From Anaeramoeba ignava BMAN (lineage: Eukaryota > Protista > Anaeramoebae): a stretch of DNA of 64,000 nt. The notes below the pieces were generated by a model. The model had not been told where the DNA came from. It was given only the letters and a program-made list of their open reading frames with translations, and did not search any database. The position numbers and the translations under genes are program-made. The stretch lies in assembly GCA_028826165.1 (NCBI GenBank), contig JAPDFW010000023.1:1-64000 (forward strand). The letters are read 5' to 3'. Each line of letters begins with the position of its first letter. Position 1 is the stretch's first letter. Below, in pieces: positions 1,678 through 20,699 of the stretch.

Positions 1678-3190
1678 AAACTATTTTAATTAATAAAAAA
1701 AAGTAAAGAAAGAAATTATTTAATATTAATAAATTTTTTTGATATTTTTGTTTATTTGTTTTTAAATTAAAATTATAAAGTTAATTCAATTTATTTTCAT
1801 TTATCTAACATAAAAAATAAATAAATATAAATATAAAATAAATATAATTATAAATATTAAATATAATTTCAAAAAAATAATTAATTTGATAAATATTTAT
1901 TTCTTTTTCTTTTTTTTTTTGGATTATGAATAAATTTAAATTTAAATTAATAATAAATTATTATTGAAATAAAAAATAAAGAAATAAAAAAGAAATAAAA
2001 GAGTTTTGAATAATTTCTATTTATTTATTTATTTACTCCTATTTTTTTTAAAATCAAAATTTGTTTAATTATTAATAATTATTTTTTGTTTTGTTTTTTT
2101 GTTTTTTAGAATTTAAAGATATTAATTAGAATTAAAAAAAAAGAATTAAAAAAGAAATTTGAATAAAAAATCCATTTTTTTTCTTGTAAGAGATTTATTT
2201 TATATTATAAATAAATGAAAAGAAAGAAAAATTCATTTTTTATTTTGAAATTTAAATTTGAAAAAAAAGAAAATAAATTTGATATTTTTTTTTTTTTCTT
2301 TTTCTTTTTCTTATTGGAATTTAAATTAAAACAAAATTTAATAAAGAAAAATTGAATAAAATTTATTTTTTTCTTTATTATTATTATTATTTTGAATAAA
2401 AATTTCAAATAAATACATATTCATTCATCTTATTCTTTTGTTCTTTTTTTTCTTTTTAAATTTATTAATTATTAATATTATTTACAAATAAAGAAAATAA
2501 TATTTATTCCTTAATTCATTTTAATTCATTTTAATTTTTAAAATTAAAAATAAAAAAATTATGATAAAAATGAAAATAATCAAAAAAATGAAATAATAAT
2601 AAATTATCTTCTTTTTTTTTAAAAAATTTTTACAAAAGAAAAGACAAGATAATAATTTCAAATTCAAAAAATAAAATTGTTTTCTTTTCTTTTCCAATTT
2701 AATTTAATTTAATTTTAATTTTAATTTTAAGAATTATTTTGTAAAACTTGTGTTTTTTTTTTGAAAAGAAAAAAATAAAAAAAATTTAAATATAAAAGAG
2801 AAAAGAAAATATTTAAAAAAAAATATAATTCAAATCTTTCTTTTTACATATTTAAATTTTATAAAATAATATCTAATAAATTTATTATTTAATTTTTATT
2901 ATTAATATTTTACAGCCTATTTTATTTAATTTTATTTATTATTCAAAAAAAAAAGTTTTAGAAAAAAATTCAAAAATTTTTGTTTTTAATTTTCATAAAT
3001 TTTGTTTTCCAAATTAAAAATAAAATGGAAAATTAAATTATTAAATAAAATTTACCACCTATTATTATTATTATTATTATTAGATTTATTTTTAAAAATA
3101 AAATTTTATTAAAATAAAAAACAATTTAAATTTAAAAAAAATATAATTTTGATTATTATTTATTTAATTTTTTTTGGAAATAATTACTCT
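1678..3190 (-). other. Further candidate microexons: 3188-3190 AGA, 3056-3058 GTG, 2914-2916 GCT, 2037-2038 GA (2 nt), 1678-1680 TTT
   Basis: Same ATAG-(N2-3)-GTAA pattern and strand; the first three are spaced about 130-140 nt apart. No protein motif confirms them. Confidence 0.45.
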
Positions 3191-6586: not shown

Positions 6587-6682
6587 TCCACTTAAATTAA
6601 AATTAGCTCCATTATCAACTAATAATTTAATCATATCAAATGTAATTGATTCATTCCTACATAAATAATGAACTGGAGACCA
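6587..6682 (-). CDS. Ankyrin-repeat exon
   Basis: AAG|TGG TCT CCA GTT CAT...AGT GGA|GTAAGT; 32 codons WSPVHYLC...[14 protein letters not shown]. Confidence 0.88.
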
Positions 6683-9600
6683 CTTTTTTTTTGTTTTGAA
6701 ATAATAAATTAAATTAAATTAAATTAAATTAAAAAATAAATTTCTCTTTAATTTATATTTTAAATAATTTTCTCTTATATTTTTTTTGTTATTTAAAATT
6801 AAAAAATTTATAATTTTTTTTGAAATAATATTTTTTTTGTGTTTTTTTGAAAATCAAAATTAAAATAATAAATAAAATTACTCTCTAATTTATTATTTAT
6901 TTTTAATTTAAAAAAGAAAAGATTAGATTTAAATTGTTTTTTGTTTTTTGTTTTTTGTTTTTGAAAAAAAATAAAATAATTAAATTGAGGAAATTTTGTA
7001 TATTTATTAAGATTTTCCATTAATTTCCAAATATATTTAATTTAATTTAATTTAATTTAATTTAATTTAATTTAATTTAATTTAATTTAATTTAATAAAT
7101 ATATTAAAATCTTATTAAATTATTAAAGGTTAATTGAAGAGAAATAATAATAATATAGATTTATATTTTAAGGTTATGAAAGATAGAGAGATTATAAAGG
7201 AATAAATAATAAGATGAAAAGAGGAATATATTTATATTTATATTTATATTTATATTTATATTTATATTTATATTTATATATATTTATATTTATATTTATA
7301 TTTATATTTATATTTATATTTATATTTATATTTATATTTATATTTATATTTATATTTATATTTATATTTATATTTATATTTATATTTATATTTATATTTA
7401 TATTTATATTTATATTTATATTTATATTTATATTTATATTTATATTTATATTTATATTTATATTTATATATTTTTATATTTATTTTATATTTATATTATT
7501 TTATTTTTATATTTATATTTATATTTATATTTATTTATATTTATATTTATATTTATATTTATATTTATATTTATATTATATTTTATATTTATATTTATAT
7601 TTATATTTATATTTATATTTATATTTATATTTATATTTATATTTATATTTATATTTATTTAGTTAAAATATCTAAGATAAGAGATAATTACAAAAACAAG
7701 ATAAATTCAATTTGAAAAAAAAATCAAAATAATAAAAATAATTTATCAAAAAATTAAATTTAATTAATTAATAAGAAAGAAAGAAATTGAAAATATTCAA
7801 TCTAATCAATAAAAAAAATATGAGAAATAATAATATTTTAAATAAGATTAAAGAAATAATACAAAAAAAAAAGTAATTCTTTAAATTAAATTAAATTAAA
7901 TTAAATTAAATTAAATTAAAATTATTCAAATAAAAATAAAAAAGATTTTGAATAATTTATAAATAAAAGTGTTAATTATTCTTATTTAAAAATTTATAAT
8001 AAAAATAATAAATAAATAATTTATAACAAGAAATATCAAAATTTTTTTCTTATTTTTATAAAATTAGGAAATAGATATAAATTTAAAGAAAAAAAATCAA
8101 ATTAAATATAGAAATTCAAAAATATTAAATTAAAAATTAATTAAAACAAGATATTACAAATTTTAAATTTATATAAATTAATTATCAGAAAATCATTTCT
8201 TAATATATTTGAAATTATTAATAATATTATCAATTTTCATCTATTAGGAATTATTCAAAATAAAAATAAAAATAATATATTAACTCTTTTTTTTTGAAAT
8301 TTTAAAAATGAAAGGAATAAAATATCAAATAAAAAAAATATTCAAAATTTATTTAAAAATATTAAAAAAGAAAGAAAATTGAAATAATAAAATGAATTAA
8401 ATTCACAAAAAATAAATCAATTCTAAATTTAAAATATAATTTATTTATTAATATTAATGAATTAAATAGAATAAATAAAACTCAAAAAAAAATTAGAAAT
8501 AAATTTAAAAATATATTTCTAAAATAAAGAATAACAATTTCCATAATACAAGAAATATATTTGAGAAAAAAGAATATATTTTGAAAATTATTATTAATTT
8601 AAGAAATAAATCAAAGAGGAATAAAAATATTTATCAAATAATATATATATAAGTAAATATACTCAATAAATTAAAAATTATAATAAAAATATTAATATAA
8701 ATTAAAATAGAAGAATTAAATGTTATTAGAGAATATATGAAATATATAAATCAATATCAAATTATGAATAAAATAAATCAAATAATTGAAAAAAAAATTA
8801 GGAAAGGAAATAAAAATATATAATAAGATGAGGATATTTTAATCAAATAAACAAATAAAATTGAAAAAAAAACATTTGTGATTTAATACTCAAATCATAT
8901 TTAATATTCAAAATAATGTAATAAGAAATATAAATCATTTTTTTTTGGAAATCAAAAATTAAATTAAAATAAAAATTATCTCAAAAACAAAAATAAATAT
9001 TAATCAAGAAGAAAGAAAAAAGAAAAAAGAAAAAAAGAAATATTATCAATCAATAAAATAATAATTTCAAGATATAATAATGAGAAGAATTGAGAAATCA
9101 AAAAAAAAATTTAAATCAGAAATCAATTCTCAATATTTCAATAATTAGAAATATAAAAGATAATAAATTTAAGAAAAGAAAATTTATATAAATATAAATA
9201 TAAATAGATAAAAAATTAAGATTGGAATTAATTTAACATAATTTAATTCAAAAAAAAAAAGTAAATAATATTGATAAAAAAATATTTTGAGGAATAAAAA
9301 ATAGATAATAAAAAATAGATAAATAAATTAATGAATTGAAATGAAAAGAATAAAGAAAAAGAAAAAGAAAAAGATATTATATTTAATAATAAATAAAAAA
9401 TAATTTAAATAACTTATTGATGAAATTAAAATACAAGTTAAAGAATCAATATTTAAATAAAATAAAATAAAATAAAATAGAAAATAAAATAATAATCATA
9501 CAATTTGATATTAAATAAATTAAATAAATAATTCCTTATAATAAATTAATAAAAAATAATTTAAAATTCAAGAAATAGTTCAATTTATGAATATAATAAG

Positions 9601-10293
9601 ATAAAAAATTTATCAAAAATTATTATATTATATTATATTATATTGAAAAAAAGAAAATTCAAAAATATTATTATTATCAATTTATTAAATAAATAAACAG
9701 AATAATGAAAGAATAAATAAAGAATATGAATCCAAAAGTAATAAATTAAATGTTTTCAAGAAGAATTATGTTTATCTATAAACAATTTATTAATAAGAAT
9801 ATTTATTATTTTTTTTTGAAAAGAATATTTGAATAAATTAAATTATTATGAGAATATATCTTGTATAAATAAATTGGATTTAGAAAAAATAATGAATATA
9901 AGAATAGAAATTTTAAAATTACAAAATAAATTAATATAAATAAAATAACCTTATATAATAAATATAAATATTCAAAAATATTTTGATATAATTAATTAGA
10001 AAATTAATTAGAAAAATTATTATCAAATTTCATCAATATTATTATTATTATTATTTAAAACTTCTTAAATAAATATTATAAGGTAAATAAATATGGAATA
10101 AATCAGAAAGAGAAATATTATTTATCCCTTTTTTTAATATTTGGAATGATTAATCATTTTATTATTGAAGAGATAAAATTTATTATTGATTATATGATTA
10201 TATTGATATAAAAAATTTTCATATATAGAAATTGTATTTAAAAGTTCAAATAATATTAATAACAATTCTTGAAAAAAATTATGAATAAAATCA

Positions 10294-10324
<31 letters not shown>

Positions 10325-13300
10325 GGAAATATTAAATATCTTGAAATTATTCTTAATTCAAATAAATATATTGAAAATAATATTCAAAAAAAAAAATTCA
10401 GAAAAAAAACAATTTTTTAATTAATTAATTAAGGTTTATAATCAATTTAAATAATATTTCAAATCATTTATAAAATAATTATTTATAAAATAACAATTCT
10501 TACATAATTATATTATGTAACAAAAACCCTAATAATATTATTATTATTAATAAAAAGAAATAATATCAAAGAATAAATTTAATTGTTAATAAACATATTA
10601 AATCAAGTTTTATTTAAAAAAAATTAATTTATATTCATATATTTTGACTTTTTGGAATGAAATAAACATTTCTAATTTCATAATTCAAATAAATATAAGA
10701 AGATAGAAAATAATAGAAAAAAATTAAAATAAAATTAGAAAATCTTAATTCAAGAAATTATATTCAATCTTTATAAATAAGATAGAAATAAGGAATACAA
10801 AATATTTCAAAATAATTCAAAGAATATTTATTTTTTAGAAAGATAAAAAGAAATTAGAATGAATCAAGGATAGAAAAAAAAATAATTTATTTAGAAATAA
10901 TTAAATTATAAACCAAAAAAAAAATCAAAGAATAAAAAAATATCTAAAATATCAATAAAAAAAATATTATTCTTCTAAAATTAATAATTTTCATAAATGG
11001 AATCAATAAATATACTTATTAAATGAAAAAAAAATAATAATATGAAATATATCTATGTTATTTAAAGAAAAGAAAAGAAATATTAAATTATTTTCTTTAT
11101 TTGTAAATATTAAATTTATCAAGAAATAAGAAATAAATGAATAAAAATCAATTCATTCAATTAAATAAATAAACAAAAACTAATAAAAGAAATTAACAGA
11201 AGGTAAATATATGAAAAAATAAACAATAGAATATATTCAGAAGATATTTGAAATTATATCATAATTTATAGTTAATGGGAAATAGAATATAATATAAGAA
11301 AGATGAATAGAAAATGAGAAATAATGAAGAAAATCAAATTCAAAATCAAATTCAATAATGATAATAAAATTAATAAGATAAATAACAAGGATAATTCTGA
11401 AAATAAAAACAAATTCAAAAATAAAAACAAATTCAAAAATAAAAACAAATTCAAAAAAGAAAGAAAAATTCAAAGAAAATAAATTATAACAAAGAAAATA
11501 AATCTAAGAAAGGATATAAAGAATATTTGGAAATATAAATTAACAAAGATATCAGAATTAGAGTTAGAATCAAAATAATGAAAAGAATAATCAGAATATT
11601 ATACAGATTATTTGATAGATTATTCTTAATTGAAAGATTAAATAGAATATGATTATAAAAATTAATTTAAAAATGAATTATTCCATTTTCCTTTATTTTC
11701 TTTTTATCAAAATTACTTCAAAAAAAACATAAAAAAAACATGTAGAAATCTCACTTATGATTTTCTTAATAAAATTAAAAATCAAAATCTTATTTGATAT
11801 TTCCCCAATTTCAAATTAAATTAAATTAAATTAAATTTAAAATTAAATTTAGATTATTTTTTTCAAATGAACTAAATAAATATTATTTTATTTGGGAAAT
11901 TTGTTTTTGTTTTTATTCAAAAGAAAAATCACAAAAAAAAATGTTTATTTTTACATACTATTTTTTTTCAAAATAAAATAAAAACAAATTTTCATTCAAT
12001 AAATAATTCATTTTTTTCAAAAAGGAAAAAAAGAAAAAAAAGTAAATTTTGATTTTGATTTATTTTTACTTCCTATTATAAATAATTTAATATTATTCAA
12101 TTTAAAATAAAAATTGATTATTTTTGATATTTATTTATTATTTAAATAAAATAATTTTAAATTTAATTTTAATTGTTTTTGTTTTTGTTTTTTGAATAAT
12201 AAAAATGTAATTTAAATTGGAAAAAATTTTATATTATTTTACATCTTGTTTATTCCAATCAGCTCCTGATTTAATAAAATGATTAAAAAGATCCTTATTA
12301 ATTGGTTTCTTTTGTGCAAAATAATGTAATAAAGTTGCTCCATTCTTTTTTATTTTTGTTTTTAAATTTAATATTGGAAAAACAAAATAATTCAAAAAAG
12401 AAATGAATTAAAATAAATTATTCATAATTTAAATAATAAAAATGAGTTAATAAATTAAAGAACTAATTGTTGTTAATTTTAATCAAAAAAATAATTCAAA
12501 CCTCCTCTTTCTAAATTTATTTTTTAAATTAAATAAATTAAATTAAAATTAAATTAAAAATATTAAAAATGTTTTTGTTTTGTTTTTGTTTTTGTTTTGA
12601 ATTACATAATCTGATTTGTTAAATTCATCTTCCAAAAGCTTTAATTCCTTTTCAATTTCAACAGTATTGATCTTTAAATTTGTAAAATTTTTTTGTTAAA
12701 ATTAAATAATAAATCAAAATAGATTAATTTTTTTTTCCAAAACAATAATAAATATTAATTTAATATATTTTAATATTAATTTCTTTTTTTTTTTAAATTT
12801 AATTATTTACTGGCTATTTATTAAATTGAATAATAAATAATTAATTAAAAAAGGATTGTGAAGAAAAAAATAGGCAAAAAAAAAGATATTTACTTCCTAT
12901 TTATTTTATGAATAATTATTTTTGAGTTAATAAATTTTTAAATATTTTATGAATAAATTAAAATAATTAGGTTTAAAAAAAAGAAAAAATATTTAATTTT
13001 TAAATTCCACAAATGAACAAAATGGCAAGGAAAATATATTTACTTTCTATTTATTAAATAATAAATAATTATAAATAAATAAAAAGAATTGAGCATAAAA
13101 AAAAGGAGAGAATATTTATTTTGAAATTTCTCAAATTAAAAAAATTGGGAAAATGAGAAAAAATGGGAAATGAAAAATATATTTACTTTCTATTTTATAA
13201 ATAATTTTCATTTTTGTTTTGAGAATTGTTTTTTGTTTTTAAATATATTAATTTACAGGCTATTTTGTTTTTATTAAATATTTTCAATTCAAATTATTTA

Positions 13301-13738
13301 AAATAAATTTATTAATTTAAAAAAATAATTACTGGCTATTTTTATTTGAATGAAAATTAATTAATTAGTTTTGGAAATAAATATATTAATAATTAATAAA
13401 TTAGAGATTAATTAAATTCAAATTATATTTTTTATTTAAATTTGAAAAATATATATATTAATTTGAAATAAAATTACTTCTTTTTCGTTCATTAATTCTT
13501 GTTCTTTGTTGATTAATTCTTGTTTTTCTTTCATTAATTTTTGTTCTTTGTTAATTAATTCTTGTTTTCCTTTCATTAATTCTTGTTCTTTGTTAATTAA
13601 TTCTTGCTTTCCTTTCATTAATTCTTGTTCTTTGTTAATTAATTCTTGCTTTTCTTTCATTAATTCTTGTTCTTTGTTAATTAATTCTTGTTTTTCTTTC
13701 ATTAATTCTTGTTCTTTTTTTGTAGTAAAATTTTCCAT
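6587..13738 (-). CDS. Multi-exon gene for a coiled-coil + ankyrin-repeat protein (partial model; probably extends in both directions)
   Basis: Phase-0 exons bounded by AG/GT on the minus strand: 13478-13738 (heptad repeat), six 3-nt exons (P,P,K,K,E,P), 12606-12671 ([22 protein letters not shown]), 12243-12344 ([34 protein letters not shown]), three 3-nt exons (E,Y,R), 6587-6682 ([32 protein letters not shown]). The spliced product is open and shows ankyrin motifs (D-x-x-G-x-T-x-L-H ... L-x-x-G-A-D/N-x-N). Confidence 0.8.
6882..6884 (-). CDS. Single-codon microexon AGA (R)
   Basis: TTAG-AGA-GTAAT; occupies the ankyrin 'G' position to give D-E-Y-R-W-S-P-V-H. Confidence 0.55.
6960..11790 (+). 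mobile_element. Degenerate full-length relative of the LINE at 14970-20510 (no ORF left)
   Basis: Colinear matches: 6998 gtatatttattaagattttccattaatttc vs 14999 gtatgtttatgcagactctccattaatttc; 8181 attatcagaaaatcatttcttaatatatttgaaatt identical to 15711; ~8830 matches the GDFN region; ~10120 matches the PLIFG region; ~11740 tgtagaaatctcactt...ttaataaaa vs 20461 tgcaggaatctcactt...ttaataaaa. Confidence 0.9.
7226..7660. repeat. (TATATT)n microsatellite expanded inside the LINE relic
   Basis: About 70 hexamer units; LINE homology resumes on both sides. Confidence 0.95.
11955..12072 (-). CDS. Two single-codon microexons: 12070-12072 GAA (E), 11955-11957 TAT (Y)
   Basis: ATAG-GAA-GTAAA and ATAG-TAT-GTAAA; they fill the ankyrin D-x-x linker. 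Confidence 0.65.
12243..12344 (-). CDS. Ankyrin-repeat exon
   Basis: AAG|AAT GGA GCA ACT...CAA GAT|GTAAAA; 34 codons NGATLLHY...[10 protein letters not shown]. Confidence 0.88.
12606..12671 (-). CDS. 66-nt exon leading into first ankyrin repeat
   Basis: AAG|ATC...TAT|GTAAT; 22 codons, no stop; ends SDY and joins NGATLLHY. Confidence 0.75.
12811..13335 (-). CDS. Cluster of six single-codon microexons: 13333-13335 CCA, 13257-13259 CCT, 13187-13189 AAA, 13044-13046 AAA, 12894-12896 GAA, 12811-12813 CCA
   Basis: Each reads ATAG-NNN-GTAA on the minus strand. They are separated by 67-147-nt introns and lie between two conventional exons of the same gene. Confidence 0.65.
13478..13738 (-). CDS. 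Exon encoding heptad coiled-coil repeats ([14 protein letters not shown])n; 21/42-bp coding minisatellite
   Basis: Part of ORF 13436..13738. GTAATT donor after ...EKE at 13477; AATAG immediately precedes the ATG, so this may be an internal exon. Confidence 0.7.
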
Positions 13739-13829
13739 CTATTTTTATTTTTATTTTTATGTTTTTGTTTTGATATTTTTAAATTAATGAATTTTTTGTA
13801 TTGTTTGTTTTTGGAATAATTAAAATTAA

Positions 13830-14690
13830 TAATATTAATTAATAGTTTATAAATATTTTGATTATTTAAATAATTTAAATAAATAATTTATGTTTAAAAT
13901 AATAATTTAATATTTTTAATTTAATTATTTTTTAATTTTTTAATTTGTTTTTTTTTTTTCCTTTTTTTTTAATAAATAAAATAAATAAAAATTAAATAAT
14001 ATTAATTAAATAATTTATAAATATTTTGATTATTTAAATAATTTAGATAAATAATTTATGTGTAAAATAATAATTTAATATTTTTAATTTAATTTATTTT
14101 TTAATTTTTAATTTGTTTTTTCCTTTTTTTTAATAAATAAAATAAATTTAAATTAAATAATATTAATAAATAATTTATAAATATTTTGATTATTTCTTTT
14201 TTTAGATAAATAATTTATGTTTAAAATATTCAAATTTAATATTTTTAATTTAATTATTTTTAATTTGTTTTTTCCTTTTTTTAATAAATAAAATAAATTG
14301 AAATTAAATCAATATTAATTAATAATTTATAAATATTTTTATTTAAATAATTTAAATAAATAATTTATGTGTAAAATAATAATTTAAAATTTTTTAATTT
14401 AATTATTTTTAATTTTTAATTTTTAATTTATGTTTTTCCTTTTTAATAAATAAAATAAATTTAAATTAAATAATATTAATAAATAATTTATAAATATTTT
14501 GATTATTTAAATAATTTAAGATAAATAATTTATGTTTAAAATAATATTTTAATATTTTTAATTTAATTATTTTTAATTTTTAATTTATGTTTTTTTCTTT
14601 TTTTTAATAAATAAAATAAATTTAAATTAAATAATATTAACAAATAATTTATAAATATTTTGTTTATTTAAATAATTTAGATAAAAAATT
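13830..14690. repeat. ~160-bp AT-rich tandem repeat, 5-6 copies
   Basis: ataaatattttgattatt-like anchor recurs near 13848, 14017, 14177, 14328, 14490, 14651. Confidence 0.8.
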
Positions 14691-14978
14691 TTTAAAAAAT
14701 AAATAAAAAATAAATATTTTTTATTTTGTGTTAACTTTTAAGATGAAAAATGAAAAATGAAAAATTTGTTTTTATTTTTTTAATTAAAAAAAAAGAAAAA
14801 AGAAAAAAGAAAAAAGAAAATTTCTTATTTATTAAGTTTTGAATAAATTTCAAAACAAATTGTTTATTTAATTTCTTTTTCAAAAATGAAATAAAATTGA
14901 TAAAATTGTTCTTAATCATAATTTTGAATTTTTTTAACTAAATTTATTTATTTTATTTTTTTCTTTTCTTTGAAAAAA

Positions 14979-17900
14979 ATGGTCAAATGGGGAAACCTGT
15001 ATGTTTATGCAGACTCTCCATTAATTTCAAAACATGTCTTCTTTGACATATTAAAACCATATAAAATAGTGAGAGGATACTTGAGAAGGAATAAGGATAG
15101 TACCGATGGACACTTTAAAGTAATTCACGATAAGAAAGCAAGAAAAGAACAAAGAAGAACATGGAGAGAAGGTTATTCAATTACAGTATCTAAAGCAAGA
15201 GAGAGTTACACTTCAAAAGAAAATCAACTTGAGAAATTAAAAGAAAAAATAACGGATCGAAATCAACGGTCACATAAAGAAAATATAGAAAAAATAATTT
15301 ATCAAACATTGAATTCAAATAACTTTATTAAGAATCCATTAATAATTAAGAAGAAAGAAATTGAAAACATTCAATCTAATCAAGAGAAACATGAAAATAT
15401 TTTAAATGAGATCAAAGAAACAATACAAAAAGCAATTCCTCAAATGAAATCAAAGAGAATAATTCAAAAAGATTTACAAGAATTTATAAATAAAAGCGTT
15501 AATTATTCTTATTTAAAAACTTATAAACAACATAATCCATATAGTTATCAGAGAACTCACAATTTACAACAAGAAATTTCAGATTCTCTGATTCAACACA
15601 ATTGGGAAATTGATACAAATTTAAGAAAAACAATTAATTATCGAAATTCAAAATATTATATGGAAACAAATTTTAACAAGATACTACAAATTTTAGATTC
15701 ATATAAATTAATTATCAGAAAATCATTTCTTAATATATTTGAAATTCTTAACATCATTAACAATTTTCACCCACTGAGAATCATTCAAAAAGGGAATCAT
15801 CAAGCTGAGATATGGGATCGAAAAAATAACATATTAAATCTTTTTCGAGATTGTAAAAATGAAAGAAATAGAATACCAAGAAATTTCAAAATTCAATTAA
15901 AAACAACAGAAGGAAACAAAATTGAAACAATAAAAGGAACTAAATTAACAAAAATAAATCAATTCTCATTCAGAATAGCATCTATAAATATCAATGGATT
16001 AAATAAAATAGGAAAGATCCAAAAATTAGAAAAAATATTCCTCCAACAAAGAATAACAATTGCTATTATACAAGAAACTCACTTGAGAAAAAGATTATAT
16101 TTTGAAAACTATCATTCATTTGAGAAACAAGGATATGGAACAATAGCACAAGGAGGAATAGCAATAATCATCAAAAAATGTATATCAAAATATGCTCAAG
16201 AAATAAAACATCCAGATAAGGATATTATACAAATTAAAATAGGAGAATTAAATATTATTGGAGTCTATATGAGACATGGAACACAATCTCAAATGATGAG
16301 TCAATTAAACGATATTATTGAAAAATTAGGAGAGGAAAGATATATAATAGCAGGAGATTTTAACCAAACAGACAAAGAAATGGAAAAACATTTCAGATTT
16401 AATACTCAAATAATACATAATACTGAGAATAGTGCAATAAGAAATATTGATCATTTCTGCGTCAAAAATCAAAATAGAGAAATTTTATCACAAACAGTAA
16501 ATATTAATCAAGAAGAAAATCTCTCAGATCATAAAATGATAGTTACAATTGAGAAAATCAATATATTGAGTGAAGAGAGAAAAGAATATTACCAACCGAC
16601 AAAACAACAATTCCAAGATATGATAATAGAAAAATTAATAAAACAAAATTTATCTGAGAAATCAATGCTCAACATTTCAATAATTAAAAATGTAAAAGAA
16701 AAATTCAAAAAAAGAAGTATCATCCATATAAATACAAAAAATAAGATAGGAATTAACTTAACAGAATTTAACTCAAAAAATAAATATAATTGGAAACAAG
16801 CTCTGAGGAAAAGGTGGAGAGAAACCATGAGAGGGATAGAAATAGATAACCAAAGCAAAACAAACTATTGGACAGAAGTAAAAAGGATAACAAAAGCTAG
16901 AAAAGATATTATATTTAATAATAATGAAAAAGAAAAAGAATTTAAACAACTTATAGATAAAATTAAAATTCCAGTTCAAGAATCAATACTTCAAGAAATA
17001 GAAAATAAAATAATAAATATAGAACCTGATATAAGATCAATCAAACAAATATTTCCCCATGATAAATTAATAAAAACAATTCAAAACTCAAGAAATAGTT
17101 CTACTTGTGATTATGATAAAATCGAAATGTATCAAAATCCTTATATTGAAAGAGAACATCCAAAATATTATGAATTTATCAAATCAGTAAACAGAATGAT
17201 GAGAGAATGGATAAGAGATCCCAACCAAGAAGTAATAAAATATATGCTTTCAAGAAGAATGGTGTTCATCTTTAAACAAGGGGATCCTAACCAAATCTCT
17301 AATTATCGCCCAATATCTATAAATAATGCTTTAGTAAGAATATTTTTGAAAAGAATACTTGAAGAAATTGAACCAATATGGGAATACATCTCGTATCAAC
17401 AAATGGGTTTTAGAAAAATGATGGATACAAGAATAGCAGTCTTAGAGTTACAAAAGAAATTGAAAGAAATAAAAGAACCATATATAATAAGTATAGACAT
17501 TCAAAAATGTTTTGATACTATTGATCATGGATTAATTAGAAAAGTTATTAATAAATTCATCAGCAATAATAATATTAAAAAACTATTAAATGAATATTAT
17601 AAGGGAAATGGATGTGGCATCTATCAAGGAGATCCATTATCACCTTTAATATTTGGAATGGTCAGTCACTTTATAATTGAGGAAATAAAAATAAGGGTTG
17701 ATCATATACAAATGTATGCTGATGATATGATACTATTAGTAAAAAATTCTTATAATAAAGTCATAACTAAAGTTCAATCAATATTACAAATTCTTGAAAA
17801 TTATGGATTAAGACCTAATAAAAATAAAACTATAATAACAAAACAAAAAAGAAATGTTAAATATCTTGGGATTATACTTGATGCAAAGAAACATATAGAA

Positions 17901-18950
17901 AATAATATAGAAAAATGTGAAAAAACTTTTCAAAAATTGAGATTTATAATACAATCCAACCAAATTTCTAATCACTTGAAAATTATAATTTATAAAATGA
18001 CGATTCTTCCACAACTATATTATGGCACAGAGGCATTAATACTCAGAAAGAAACAATATCAAAAAATGGATTTAATGGTGAACAAACATATGAAATTAAT
18101 TTTAAAAATAAACTTTCATTCACCTACGCTTACCTTTCGAAATGAAACGAATACCCCCAGTTCCAGAACACAAATAAATGTGCGTAGGTGGAAAATAAGA
18201 GAAAAATTAGATAAAATTGAAAAATCAGAACTTAAAGAATTATGTCCAATCTTCACAAATGAAAGAGAGAGAAATGATAAAATATGGGAGAATCAAAACT
18301 TGAAAATCATCCAAAAATATTTATGTTTAGCAAGGCACCAAGAAATGAGTATCAATTCAGGATGGAAAACAATAGCCTATTCAGAAATTACTAAATTAGA
18401 ACCTAAAAAACCAAAAATAAAAACATATTTAAAATATCAAAAAAGTACTATATTAATGAAATTAAGAATATTCACAAATGGACTTAAATCATATAGCCAC
18501 CACATGAGAAATAGTGATGTGAAATGTCCATGTTGTGGAGAAGAAGAAGAAACATTGGATCATTTTTTTTGGAAATGTCCAATGTATCAAGAGATAAGAA
18601 ATAAATGGTTGAAATCAATACATCCAATAAAACAAACAATTAAATTAATGAAAGAAATTAGCAGAAAGGGAATATATGACAAAACTATAGAATATATTCA
18701 AAAAGCTTTTGAGATTAGATCAGAAATGATAATGGATGAGAATATAATTGAGATAGATGAAGAGAATATTGGAAATGAAGAAAGAAATCAAAATGAAAAT
18801 CAACAACAAAGTGACATGAATAATGAAAATAATGAGAATAATAGAGGTTGGGATGGAATCCCTCTTGGTTCGCGGATATCTATATTTGGTCGCGGATGTT
18901 CTTTTGTATCCACGAACAAAAAATTATCCTCGAAATTTTTTTTTCCGTAG
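14979..18950 (+). CDS. LINE polyprotein: RRM-like N-terminus, AP endonuclease, reverse transcriptase, CCHC zinc knuckle (last ~35 aa are read-through into the inserted transposon)
   Basis: APE motifs SININGL, IQETH, GGIAII, IIAGDFN, IDH, SDH; RT motifs NYRPISI, QMGFR, DIQKCFD, QGDPLSP, YADD, KYLGI; CPCC-x8-H-x4-C. First ATG at 14979. Confidence 0.95.
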   Translation: MVKWGNLYVYADSPLISKHVFFDILKPYKIVRGYLRRNKDSTDGHFKVIHDKKARKEQRRTWREGYSITVSKARESYTSKENQLEKLKEKITDRNQRSHKENIEKIIYQTLNSNNFIKNPLIIKKKEIENIQSNQEKHENILNEIKETIQKAIPQMKSKRIIQKDLQEFINKSVNYSYLKTYKQHNPYSYQRTHNLQQEISDSLIQHNWEIDTNLRKTINYRNSKYYMETNFNKILQILDSYKLIIRKSFLNIFEILNIINNFHPLRIIQKGNHQAEIWDRKNNILNLFRDCKNERNRIPRNFKIQLKTTEGNKIETIKGTKLTKINQFSFRIASININGLNKIGKIQKLEKIFLQQRITIAIIQETHLRKRLYFENYHSFEKQGYGTIAQGGIAIIIKKCISKYAQEIKHPDKDIIQIKIGELNIIGVYMRHGTQSQMMSQLNDIIEKLGEERYIIAGDFNQTDKEMEKHFRFNTQIIHNTENSAIRNIDHFCVKNQNREILSQTVNINQEENLSDHKMIVTIEKINILSEERKEYYQPTKQQFQDMIIEKLIKQNLSEKSMLNISIIKNVKEKFKKRSIIHINTKNKIGINLTEFNSKNKYNWKQALRKRWRETMRGIEIDNQSKTNYWTEVKRITKARKDIIFNNNEKEKEFKQLIDKIKIPVQESILQEIENKIINIEPDIRSIKQIFPHDKLIKTIQNSRNSSTCDYDKIEMYQNPYIEREHPKYYEFIKSVNRMMREWIRDPNQEVIKYMLSRRMVFIFKQGDPNQISNYRPISINNALVRIFLKRILEEIEPIWEYISYQQMGFRKMMDTRIAVLELQKKLKEIKEPYIISIDIQKCFDTIDHGLIRKVINKFISNNNIKKLLNEYYKGNGCGIYQGDPLSPLIFGMVSHFIIEEIKIRVDHIQMYADDMILLVKNSYNKVITKVQSILQILENYGLRPNKNKTIITKQKRNVKYLGIILDAKKHIENNIEKCEKTFQKLRFIIQSNQISNHLKIIIYKMTILPQLYYGTEALILRKKQYQKMDLMVNKHMKLILKINFHSPTLTFRNETNTPSSRTQINVRRWKIREKLDKIEKSELKELCPIFTNERERNDKIWENQNLKIIQKYLCLARHQEMSINSGWKTIAYSEITKLEPKKPKIKTYLKYQKSTILMKLRIFTNGLKSYSHHMRNSDVKCPCCGEEEETLDHFFWKCPMYQEIRNKWLKSIHPIKQTIKLMKEISRKGIYDKTIEYIQKAFEIRSEMIMDENIIEIDEENIGNEERNQNENQQQSDMNNENNENNRGWDGIPLGSRISIFGRGCSFVSTNKKLSSKFFFP

Positions 18951-19909
18951 ATGTTAATTGAGATTCGCGAAAAATGATTAATTCGCTAAAATGAGGAAGT
19001 TCGGAAAATGTCCCTATTTGATCTCGGTGAATTATTTTGAAAAAAATTATTTTTGATCATTTTTTTCTTATGGAAAATTCGTTTTAATTTTATCAAAATT
19101 CTCAATAAAATCGCTAACCAATTCTTCTTGAAGAATTTTCTGATAGTGAAGAAGAAATTAGAGATTTTGATTCAATAAAATTTGAAGAACTGCAAGCAAC
19201 TAATAATGAACAGAGATTAGAAATTCTAACCAATTTTGGATTTCAAGATTTTCTCAGTTTATTTCAATTAGTCGAACTCGATTTTCAATATCAGGGAAGA
19301 GGAGCTAGAAGAATGAAGCAAACAAATGAAACAACTTTTCTCATGGCCTTGGTATGGAAGATTTTTTCAAGAATATTCATTAATAGTTGATAAAGCATAT
19401 TATGATCTTCAAAATGAAATTCAAATTGTGATCCCTTTCAAAAAACCGAGAGGATGTGAACTCAATCAAGAAGAACATTTTTTTAATGTTAGATTATCTT
19501 CTCTTTGGATCCAAATTGAGCATTATTACGGAAGATTAAAAGTTCTATGGTCATGCATGTCCAATAATTGGTGTGGAGAAAGAGAATATTTTTATCAAAA
19601 AGTTTTTGGAGTTTGTGTTTCCTTAACTAATTTTGAGATTCGATCTGGCCATCCTCTATCTTATAATGATTAAATTAAAAAGAAGAACAACAATCATTTT
19701 CATTTTTCAAACAATAATTTTTTTTCATAACAAATCTCTTTCTTTTTTTTTCTCATTTCAATTCCTTTTTCCTTTTGGAAATGAAAGAAAATAAAAAATT
19801 CTCAAAAAAAAATTTTTTTTTATTCCGAACAACTTAAAATAAGCGGAAATCAATTTTTTCGCGAATAGATTGATTTCCGCGAACCAGAGGGGATTCCATC
19901 CCAACCTCT
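18843..19909 (+). mobile_element. Internally deleted PIF/Harbinger-superfamily DNA transposon (~1.07 kb)
   Basis: Terminal inverted repeats AGAGGTTGGGATGGAATCCCTCTTGGTTCGCGGA and TCCGCGAACCAGAGGGGATTCCATCCCAACCTCT; flanking AAT...AAT duplication (alternatively TA); carries a transposase fragment. Confidence 0.9.
19120..19673 (+). pseudogene. Harbinger/IS5-type DDE transposase remnant
   Basis: C-terminal part LIVDKAY...PFKKP...FN..LSS...IEHYYGRLK..W matches the DDE_Tnp_4-type pattern. An upstream frame gives LTNFGFQDFLSLF...GRG...FLMALVW (HTH-like), joined out of frame near 19357; the middle of the catalytic domain is missing. Confidence 0.82.
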
Positions 19910-20350
19910 AATGATGAAAATAATAAGAATAATAATGAAATTAATAATGAAATTAATAATGAAAACAATAATGAAAATGATAATGAGAATAAAAACAAAC
20001 CCAAAAAGGTAAGGAACAAATCAAAAAAGAAGAAATCAAATCAAAAAGAAATGAAGATCAAAAAAAAGAAAAAGAAAGAAAGAAAAAAGAAAGAGAAAAA
20101 GAAAGAGAAAAAGAAAAAGAACAAAAAAAGAGAAACCAATGAAAAAGAGAAAAAAACAAAGATAATAAAGAGTAATAACAGAAGAAGAAATCTAAGAAAA
20201 AATCCAGAGAAAACTTGGAAATATCAATTATCGAAAATATCTGAATCAGATTCAGAATCAGAAACAAAGTCATGGGAAAAAGAATCGGAATATGATACAG
20301 ATTATGCTCCAGATTCTTCTTCCTTGGAAAGCTCAATAGAGAGCGACTAA
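19910..20350 (+). CDS. Displaced C-terminus of the LINE ORF (Asn-rich, Lys-rich, then acidic tail)
   Basis: Open from 19910 through ORF 20051..20350, and in frame with the main ORF once the transposon plus one target duplication is removed. Confidence 0.8.
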   Translation, partial: NDENNKNNNEINNEINNENNNENDNENKNKPKKVRNKSKKKKSNQKEMKIKKKKKKERKKKEKKKEKKKKNKKRETNEKEKKTKIIKSNNRRRNLRKNPEKTWKYQLSKISESDSESETKSWEKESEYDTDYAPDSSSLESSIESD

Positions 20351-20699
20351 ATATAGTCAAAAATGAGATGTTCCACTTACTCTTCTTTTTTAAAGTTTTT
20401 AAATTTTTTTTTATCTTCATTTCTTATTTTTCATTTCAAAAATTATTTACAAAAGAAGCATGCAGGAATCTCACTTGAGATTTCCTTAATAAAATCAAAT
20501 CAAAATCTAAATTTATTTATTTTTTCCAAATAAAAATCAATTAAAATATTTTTTTTGAAAGAATTTATAAATAAATTAAATCTATTTAAATATTGAATTT
20601 CTTTCTATTTTTTTTTTGGAAATAATTTAATAATAATTTTTAAATCAAAACAATTCAATTCTATCTATTTTTTTTTGGAATTTAAATATTAATTCTATT

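Follow-up and report, generated by a model that had tools for sequence, protein, structure and literature searches.

Codon-sized exons in described systems

Codon-sized exons in the nank genes of the truffle Tuber melanosporum were reportedly described by Iotti et al. in 2012. According to later accounts, these NACHT-ankyrin genes carry tens of 3-bp exons per gene, and these are alternatively spliced (PMC4986451, PMC3689799, PMC10197012, PMC13449251). The micro-exon genes (MEGs) of Schistosoma mansoni, which encode secreted proteins, have 10–20 exons per gene, mostly of 15 bp (range 6–81 bp) and separated by introns of 0.1–5 kb (PMC10526429). Isolated microexons of 1–15 nt in plants and animals are described as canonically spliced (GT-AG) and often misannotated (PMC8831610), and MAP4K5 has a 3-nt exon (PMC8632122). 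Introners are dispersed, near-identical insertions that in fungi have a stable predicted structure (PMC3609843, PMC3879977). For Anaeramoeba, microexons go unmentioned in the main texts and supplements of the genome papers, and no report of one-codon exons was found in the literature within reach of our search, which most subscription journals lay outside.

Here we analyse a window of 64,000 nt at the start of contig C25 of Anaeramoeba ignava BMAN (assembly of 42,843,398 bases in 147 contigs). Judged from its DNA, A. ignava appears to encode parts of many proteins one residue per exon, with about 1,000 exons of 3 bases, overlooked in the public annotation, the longest run numbering 61, and the predicted run of six in the window is one small case of this genome-wide layout.

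Comparison with truffle nank genes is the closest that can be drawn: codon-sized, frame-neutral exons occur many per gene, in an expanded ankyrin-repeat family, in both. However, the A. ignava exons are also found in coiled-coil/ankyrin, BTB, BTB-TLDc and kinase genes, with about 1,100 excess sites, runs of 61, homogenised introns and phase-1 forms. Alternative splicing is reported in Tuber and is a possibility in A. ignava. No match to a NACHT domain was found in the exons of the window gene, and its paralogs carry BTB or kinase parts. The predicted layout thus resembles nank but is not a member of that family and, as one organism is a metamonad and the other a fungus, the likeness is most likely convergent. 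Earlier reports of such a layout come mainly from this one gene family of truffles; A. ignava adds a new lineage, a larger scale, a wider range of domains, phase-1 forms and homogenised arrays. The first-pass annotation of the window had recognised the run of six as a string of one-codon exons; it set their scale too low, given the genome-wide excess, and their uniqueness too high, given that T. melanosporum genes with tens of codon-sized exons had already been reported.

The remaining systems are more distant. Like the Schistosoma MEGs, the A. ignava genes string together small exons, most of them frame-symmetric, which automatic annotation overlooks, but their exons are of 3 nt, their introns of about 70 nt, and their intracellular domains lie in ordinary large exons. 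Membership among the MEGs was rejected on exon size, on intron size and because ordinary exons, carrying ankyrin, BTB or kinase domains, encode most of the protein. Isolated plant and animal microexons establish that GT-AG splicing handles exons down to 1–3 nt; unlike the exons studied here, however, they are old and conserved and occur singly or at most in adjacent pairs, with no long one-codon runs in the sources consulted. Introners share with our arrays the many near-identical intron copies, but the A. ignava copies are in tandem, three bases apart, and form no consistent hairpin, and the arrays are probably not introners.

A run of six putative one-codon exons

The gene lies on the minus strand, and its spliced model is given below in the order of transcription, with positions numbered within the window.

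13478..13738, minus: exon 1 (also the first exon of KAJ5079628.1), 87 codons with a coiled-coil-like 7/14-residue repeat, ending in phase 0
13333..13335, minus: 3-nt exon CCA (Pro), TAG-NNN-GTAA, kept in 7 of 7 aligned copies
13257..13259, minus: 3-nt exon CCT (Pro), TAG-NNN-GTAA, in the paralog alignment
13187..13189, minus: 3-nt exon AAA (Lys), TAG-NNN-GTAA, in the paralog alignment
13044..13046, minus: fourth microexon, 3-nt exon AAA (Lys), which is GAA (Glu) in six aligned paralogs
12894..12896, minus: 3-nt exon GAA (Glu), TAG-NNN-GTAA, in the paralog alignment
12811..12813, minus: sixth microexon, 3-nt exon CCA (Pro), which is CTA (Leu) in the C57 copy
12606..12671, minus: 66-nt exon, a helical cap ahead of the ankyrin repeats, common to paralogs with other N-termini (BTB, kinase, ankyrin)
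12502..12510, minus: 9-nt exon (K-E-E), absent from the NCBI model; it gives an ungapped register with A. ignava protein P0028
12243..12344, minus: 102-nt ankyrin repeat exon (Pfam Ank, weak, E 0.008)
12070..12072, minus: 3-nt exon GAA (Glu) for the first ankyrin hairpin residue; paralogs have AAA or GGA
11955..11957, minus: 3-nt exon TAT (Tyr), ankyrin hairpin residue 2
6885..11954, minus: 5-kb intron with a decayed antisense LINE copy (about 7763–11349; 69% identity over 3,780 nt to an intact LINE)
6882..6884, minus: 3-nt exon AGA (Arg), hairpin residue 3, at the usual Gly position
6587..6682, minus: second ankyrin exon, 96 nt (Pfam Ank_3, E 1.5e-4), with many paralogs
Within 1678..3190, minus: candidate 3-nt exons AGA (3190), GTG (3058), GCT (2916) and TTT (1680)
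Within 1678..3190, minus: candidate 2-nt exon GA (2038)

All six TAG-NNN-GTAA sites claimed between the coiled-coil and cap exons are present on the minus strand, separated by gaps of 73, 67, 140, 147 and 80 nt, with outer introns of 142 and 139 nt. Each triplet is bounded by a canonical AG acceptor and GT donor, both flanking exons are in phase 0, and the 67–147 nt introns fit the spliceable size for a species whose 32,108 introns have a mode of 76 nt, a minimum of 35 nt and 8% G+C (PMC11550330). From exon 1 through to the second ankyrin exon, all pieces have AG/GT ends and lengths divisible by three; nine of them are 3-nt exons, three at the hairpin. The motif is also strand-specific: the window has 13 TAG-N3-GTAA sites on its minus strand, each of them downstream of exon 1, and none on its plus strand, and other spacer lengths (TAG-Nk-GTAA) give 0–5 sites in the window. 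Chance was rejected as a source of the run, as base shuffles of the 806-nt block never gave six sites; even for the less strict AG-NNN-GT, the mean over 20,000 shuffles was 0.24 and the maximum did not pass four. The further claim that the few C/G-containing spots of this block are mostly such motifs stood for the GT and AG dinucleotides, most of which belong to the motifs (7 of 10 GT, including the first donor), but not for C or G bases as such, of which the block has 62 and 33.

We consider it very probable that genuine spliceosomal exons of 3 nt lie at the six sites and hold, with equally high confidence, that they would insert P-P-K-K-E-P ahead of the ankyrin cap, as a linker to the coiled-coil exon; for this linker the coding tests described below bear on the microexon class, there being no homologous intronless sequence for the linker itself. 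NCBI model KAJ5079628.1 omits all the small exons and ends after the first ankyrin exon. Domain and protein searches of the spliced model, run exon by exon, gave 88 matches to that ankyrin exon in a representative protein library (those examined were ankyrin proteins), and an Atlas search confirmed the assignment, while an Rfam search returned no match. The matches from the protein searches are NCBI genome models that lack the microexons. EukProt transcriptome protein P0208, from a gene without such an insert, is identical to its model and thus uninformative on microexons. Exon 1 could be an internal exon, since its ATG comes right after a TAG; no GTAA donor was found upstream of it as far as 14970. 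At the other end, no further large exon was found between the candidates at 1678..3190 and the end of the contig.

Six paralogs near contig ends retain all six sites in the same order, and their upstream exons, while variable, end in phase 0 every time. The differences among copies within the run—Lys to Glu at the fourth site and Pro to Leu at the sixth in one copy—both change the residue. In the paralog alignment, none of the 24 splice-dinucleotide columns is variable, against 64 of 680 intron columns (p = 0.16), which is weak evidence and not significant alone, the copies being too young. Single-base frameshifts in two copies (L004 and L009) may be assembly errors. The cap-plus-ankyrin module (window 12243–12671) is also present on C1, C27, C28, C42, C57, C108, C137, C138 and C140, where it follows a coiled coil, BTB, kinase or more ankyrins, mostly near contig ends; these paralogs reflect shuffling of a phase-0 module, probably at subtelomeric locations.

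Genome-wide pattern and coding signature

Counts of AATAG-Nk-GTAAA across the genome are 74, 124, 1,219, 91 and 124 for k = 0, 2, 3, 4 and 6, so that spacer 3 stands far above the others. The figure of 1,219 is a lower bound, since this narrow pattern misses other flanks. Spacer lengths were compared with one another because a reversed-pattern control, high for spacers 0, 2, 4 and 6, is not a fair null. At seven other loci, the gene strand has 249 of the 3-nt sites and the opposite strand 7. The introns between microexons have a median length of 73 nt.

The triplets themselves carry a coding signature. Among the genome-wide 3-nt sites, the stop triplets TAA and TAG occur twice and the Tyr triplets TAT and TAC 44 times. 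Read in the frame that the flanking exons dictate, neither 184 phase-0 codons nor 80 phase-1 codons include a stop, against 16.5 and 5.5 in shuffles. G+C content by triplet position is 0.44/0.34/0.02 in phase-0 runs (184 exons) and 0.23/0.07/0.50 in phase-1 runs (86 exons); the wobble position thus shifts with the phase given by the flanking large exons, falling on the third base in phase 0 and on the second in phase 1. This coding signature (stops, wobble and the ankyrin register described below) was found for the microexon class as a whole rather than for the six exons one by one. Phase-0 one-codon exons, as originally proposed, are strongly supported by these indirect tests of spacer, strand, stops, wobble and register. 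The layout is predicted to cover linkers, low-complexity tails and variable loops, i.e., ankyrin hairpin tips and the TLDc loop after GPxFG.

The ankyrin register bears directly on translation of the triplets. In other organisms, 207 of 233 junctions have three residues, usually ending in Gly, from ankyrin repeat position 32 to the start of the following repeat, and the same holds for 16 of 18 junctions in A. flamelloides; NCBI models of A. ignava have zero hairpin residues at 11 of 13. The window gene has exactly three microexons at this junction, matching the residues that those models lack, and the hairpin triplets of the C42 copy read K-F-G, with Gly at the conserved place. Elsewhere, at C2:7559-8353, at least eight 3-nt exons separate two ankyrin exons at a junction that usually has three residues, which implies either a long loop or a choice among exons. 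About six lie between successive ankyrin exons at C73:175504-176485, and another long array is at C87:271578-274194; all three loci are taken from search listings.

The triplets of TLDc genes are located in the loop that follows GPxFG, where the A. ignava paralog models differ most in length (about 2 to 11 residues). The BTB-TLDc genes on C1 (L014:3260-3890, L015 and L016:4020-6470) have phase-1 3-nt exons at this place, and their inserts are Asp/Tyr/Phe-rich and of 7 to more than 20 residues.

Long arrays in unrelated genes

Long runs also occur in a kinase gene (C137), in BTB genes (C1 and C57) and in BTB-TLDc genes (C1). The kinase array is the strongest example: 61 consecutive 3-nt exons (L017:4596-9172) with near-identical introns of about 68 nt are followed, after a 4-kb insert, by 43 more (L018:3319-6768). 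The two runs probably belong to the same gene, in which case one kinase gene may have more than 100 one-codon exons; NCBI model P0001 runs into an intron instead. Introns of the L017 array show 91% similarity, with 50 identical pairs, and which codon is present is independent of the intron variant. Only eight codons are used in this run, and all 15 of its Ser codons are TCT, against 28 of 115 in ordinary exons (p ~6e-10). The long L018 run reads as a coherent peptide. In L013, L016 and L017, some units have lost their donor or acceptor to decay.

The BTB genes at L013:3290-7130 (C1) and L020 (C57) have about 30–36 one-codon exons each. In the L013 array, some units have mutated donors, and an ATT microsatellite of about 1 kb lies inside it; two sites in L020 are of 2 nt, for which homopolymer assembly errors are possible.

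Origin and use of the one-codon exons

Runs between near-identical introns most likely grew by tandem duplication. We propose that runs would expand through duplication of intron-plus-codon units, that unequal exchange within introns would reshuffle these units, and that single residues could in this way be gained, lost or reordered without frameshift. In the window, introns 4 (13047–13186) and 5 (12897–13043) are mutually homologous (local alignment z = 9.4 vs shuffles), a putative trace of such a duplication, while most introns within the run are dissimilar to one another. In splicing, each short AT-rich intron would be recognised across the intron and removed one by one, with each 3-nt exon fused to the lengthening exon upstream of it before splicing proceeds to the following donor.

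Whether subsets of exons are skipped, so as to generate many binding-loop variants, is a sub-question within this reading. By analogy with the nank genes of T. melanosporum, which offer a precedent (PMC4986451, PMC3689799, PMC10197012), combinatorial use is a real possibility, though we judge it somewhat the less likely outcome. Every exon preserves frame, the sites lie at ankyrin hairpins and in the length-variable TLDc loop, the ankyrin junction on C2 (exons 8353 and 7559) has more exons than the usual three residues, and the arrays hold units with decayed splice sites. Constitutive use, however, fits the window gene, in which three exons supply the three residues needed, as well as the coherent peptides of long runs such as L018, and the run of six encodes a linker rather than a known binding surface. 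Where three exons supply three needed residues, we expect inclusion to be mostly full; in the longer runs we expect some skipping, with the odds roughly even. A broader scheme of genome-wide diversification, in which units would be copied and reordered in DNA and skipped in RNA to vary ankyrin, BTB-TLDc and kinase binding loops residue by residue, possibly for recognising symbionts or viruses, is speculative and rather unlikely.

The system may alternatively be real in the species while the copy in the window, possibly a truncated gene, is a subtelomeric duplicate, silent or broken, whose six exons are unused today. The gene heads toward the contig start with no large exon past 6587, its LINE-filled 5-kb intron exceeds the longest annotated intron of 4,168 nt (PMC11550330), and frameshifts, possibly assembly errors, are present in the L004 and L009 copies. 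Yet all exons are open and in phase with intact splice sites in surroundings that erode to about 8% G+C, and they remained open on either side of a LINE copy that decayed to 69% identity and shifted strongly toward A+T. We consider a silent copy unlikely.

An origin by a mobile, introner-like intron that entered an already existing coding sequence between each codon and the next is harder to sustain and seems improbable. It would account for different codons flanked by identical introns, and for the arrays of unrelated BTB (L013) and kinase (L017) genes sharing the first 18 and last 17 intron bases. However, the few codons of the L017 run, its all-TCT serines and the independence of codon and intron variant are a better fit to reshuffled codon cassettes than to intron insertion, although selection of TCT may also owe something to avoiding exons that end in a cryptic AG; moreover, the copies seen are in tandem, and nine introns showed no consistent hairpin (z -2.9 to +1.3).

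That the motifs are untranslated intron-internal signals (recursive ratchet sites, nested introns or decoys) or a tandem repeat agrees with the annotation of the block as a single intron and with long runs being arrays of near-identical units, but is very improbable, as zero-spacer AG-GT is not enriched (74 sites), the introns of the window run are mostly dissimilar, and stop avoidance, phase-following wobble and exact ankyrin register would be left without reason. Recursive splice sites with zero-length exons were rejected on the spacer counts (74 sites for spacer 0 and 1,219 for spacer 3), and a plain satellite on stop avoidance, wobble and ankyrin register.

If the one-codon exons are real, 61 of them in a row would be an extreme of gene layout and back-to-back 3-nt exons a natural test of the spliceosome. 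It would also suggest that a free-living metamonad independently reached the ankyrin-microexon design of the truffle and extended it to other domains. Many A. ignava models in NCBI and UniProt would be wrong at likely binding loops, and the intron count for the species would be too low. RNA-seq of A. ignava BMAN exists (BioProject PRJNA634776; PMC11550330).

Surroundings of the gene

An AT-rich tandem repeat (period 161, 5.4 copies; window 13818–14691) lies directly upstream of exon 1, and a repeat akin to it also precedes the C57 copy. Beyond this repeat, an intact LINE-type ORF of 1,326 aa on the plus strand (window 14970–18950) has endonuclease, reverse transcriptase and zf-RVT domains, and adjoins a patch of 27% G+C with short ORFs on both strands (window 19326–20420). 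From 30300 to 62100, the window consists of large AT-rich satellite arrays (periods 26–31, 171 and others) with extreme GC skew, in which no gene was seen.
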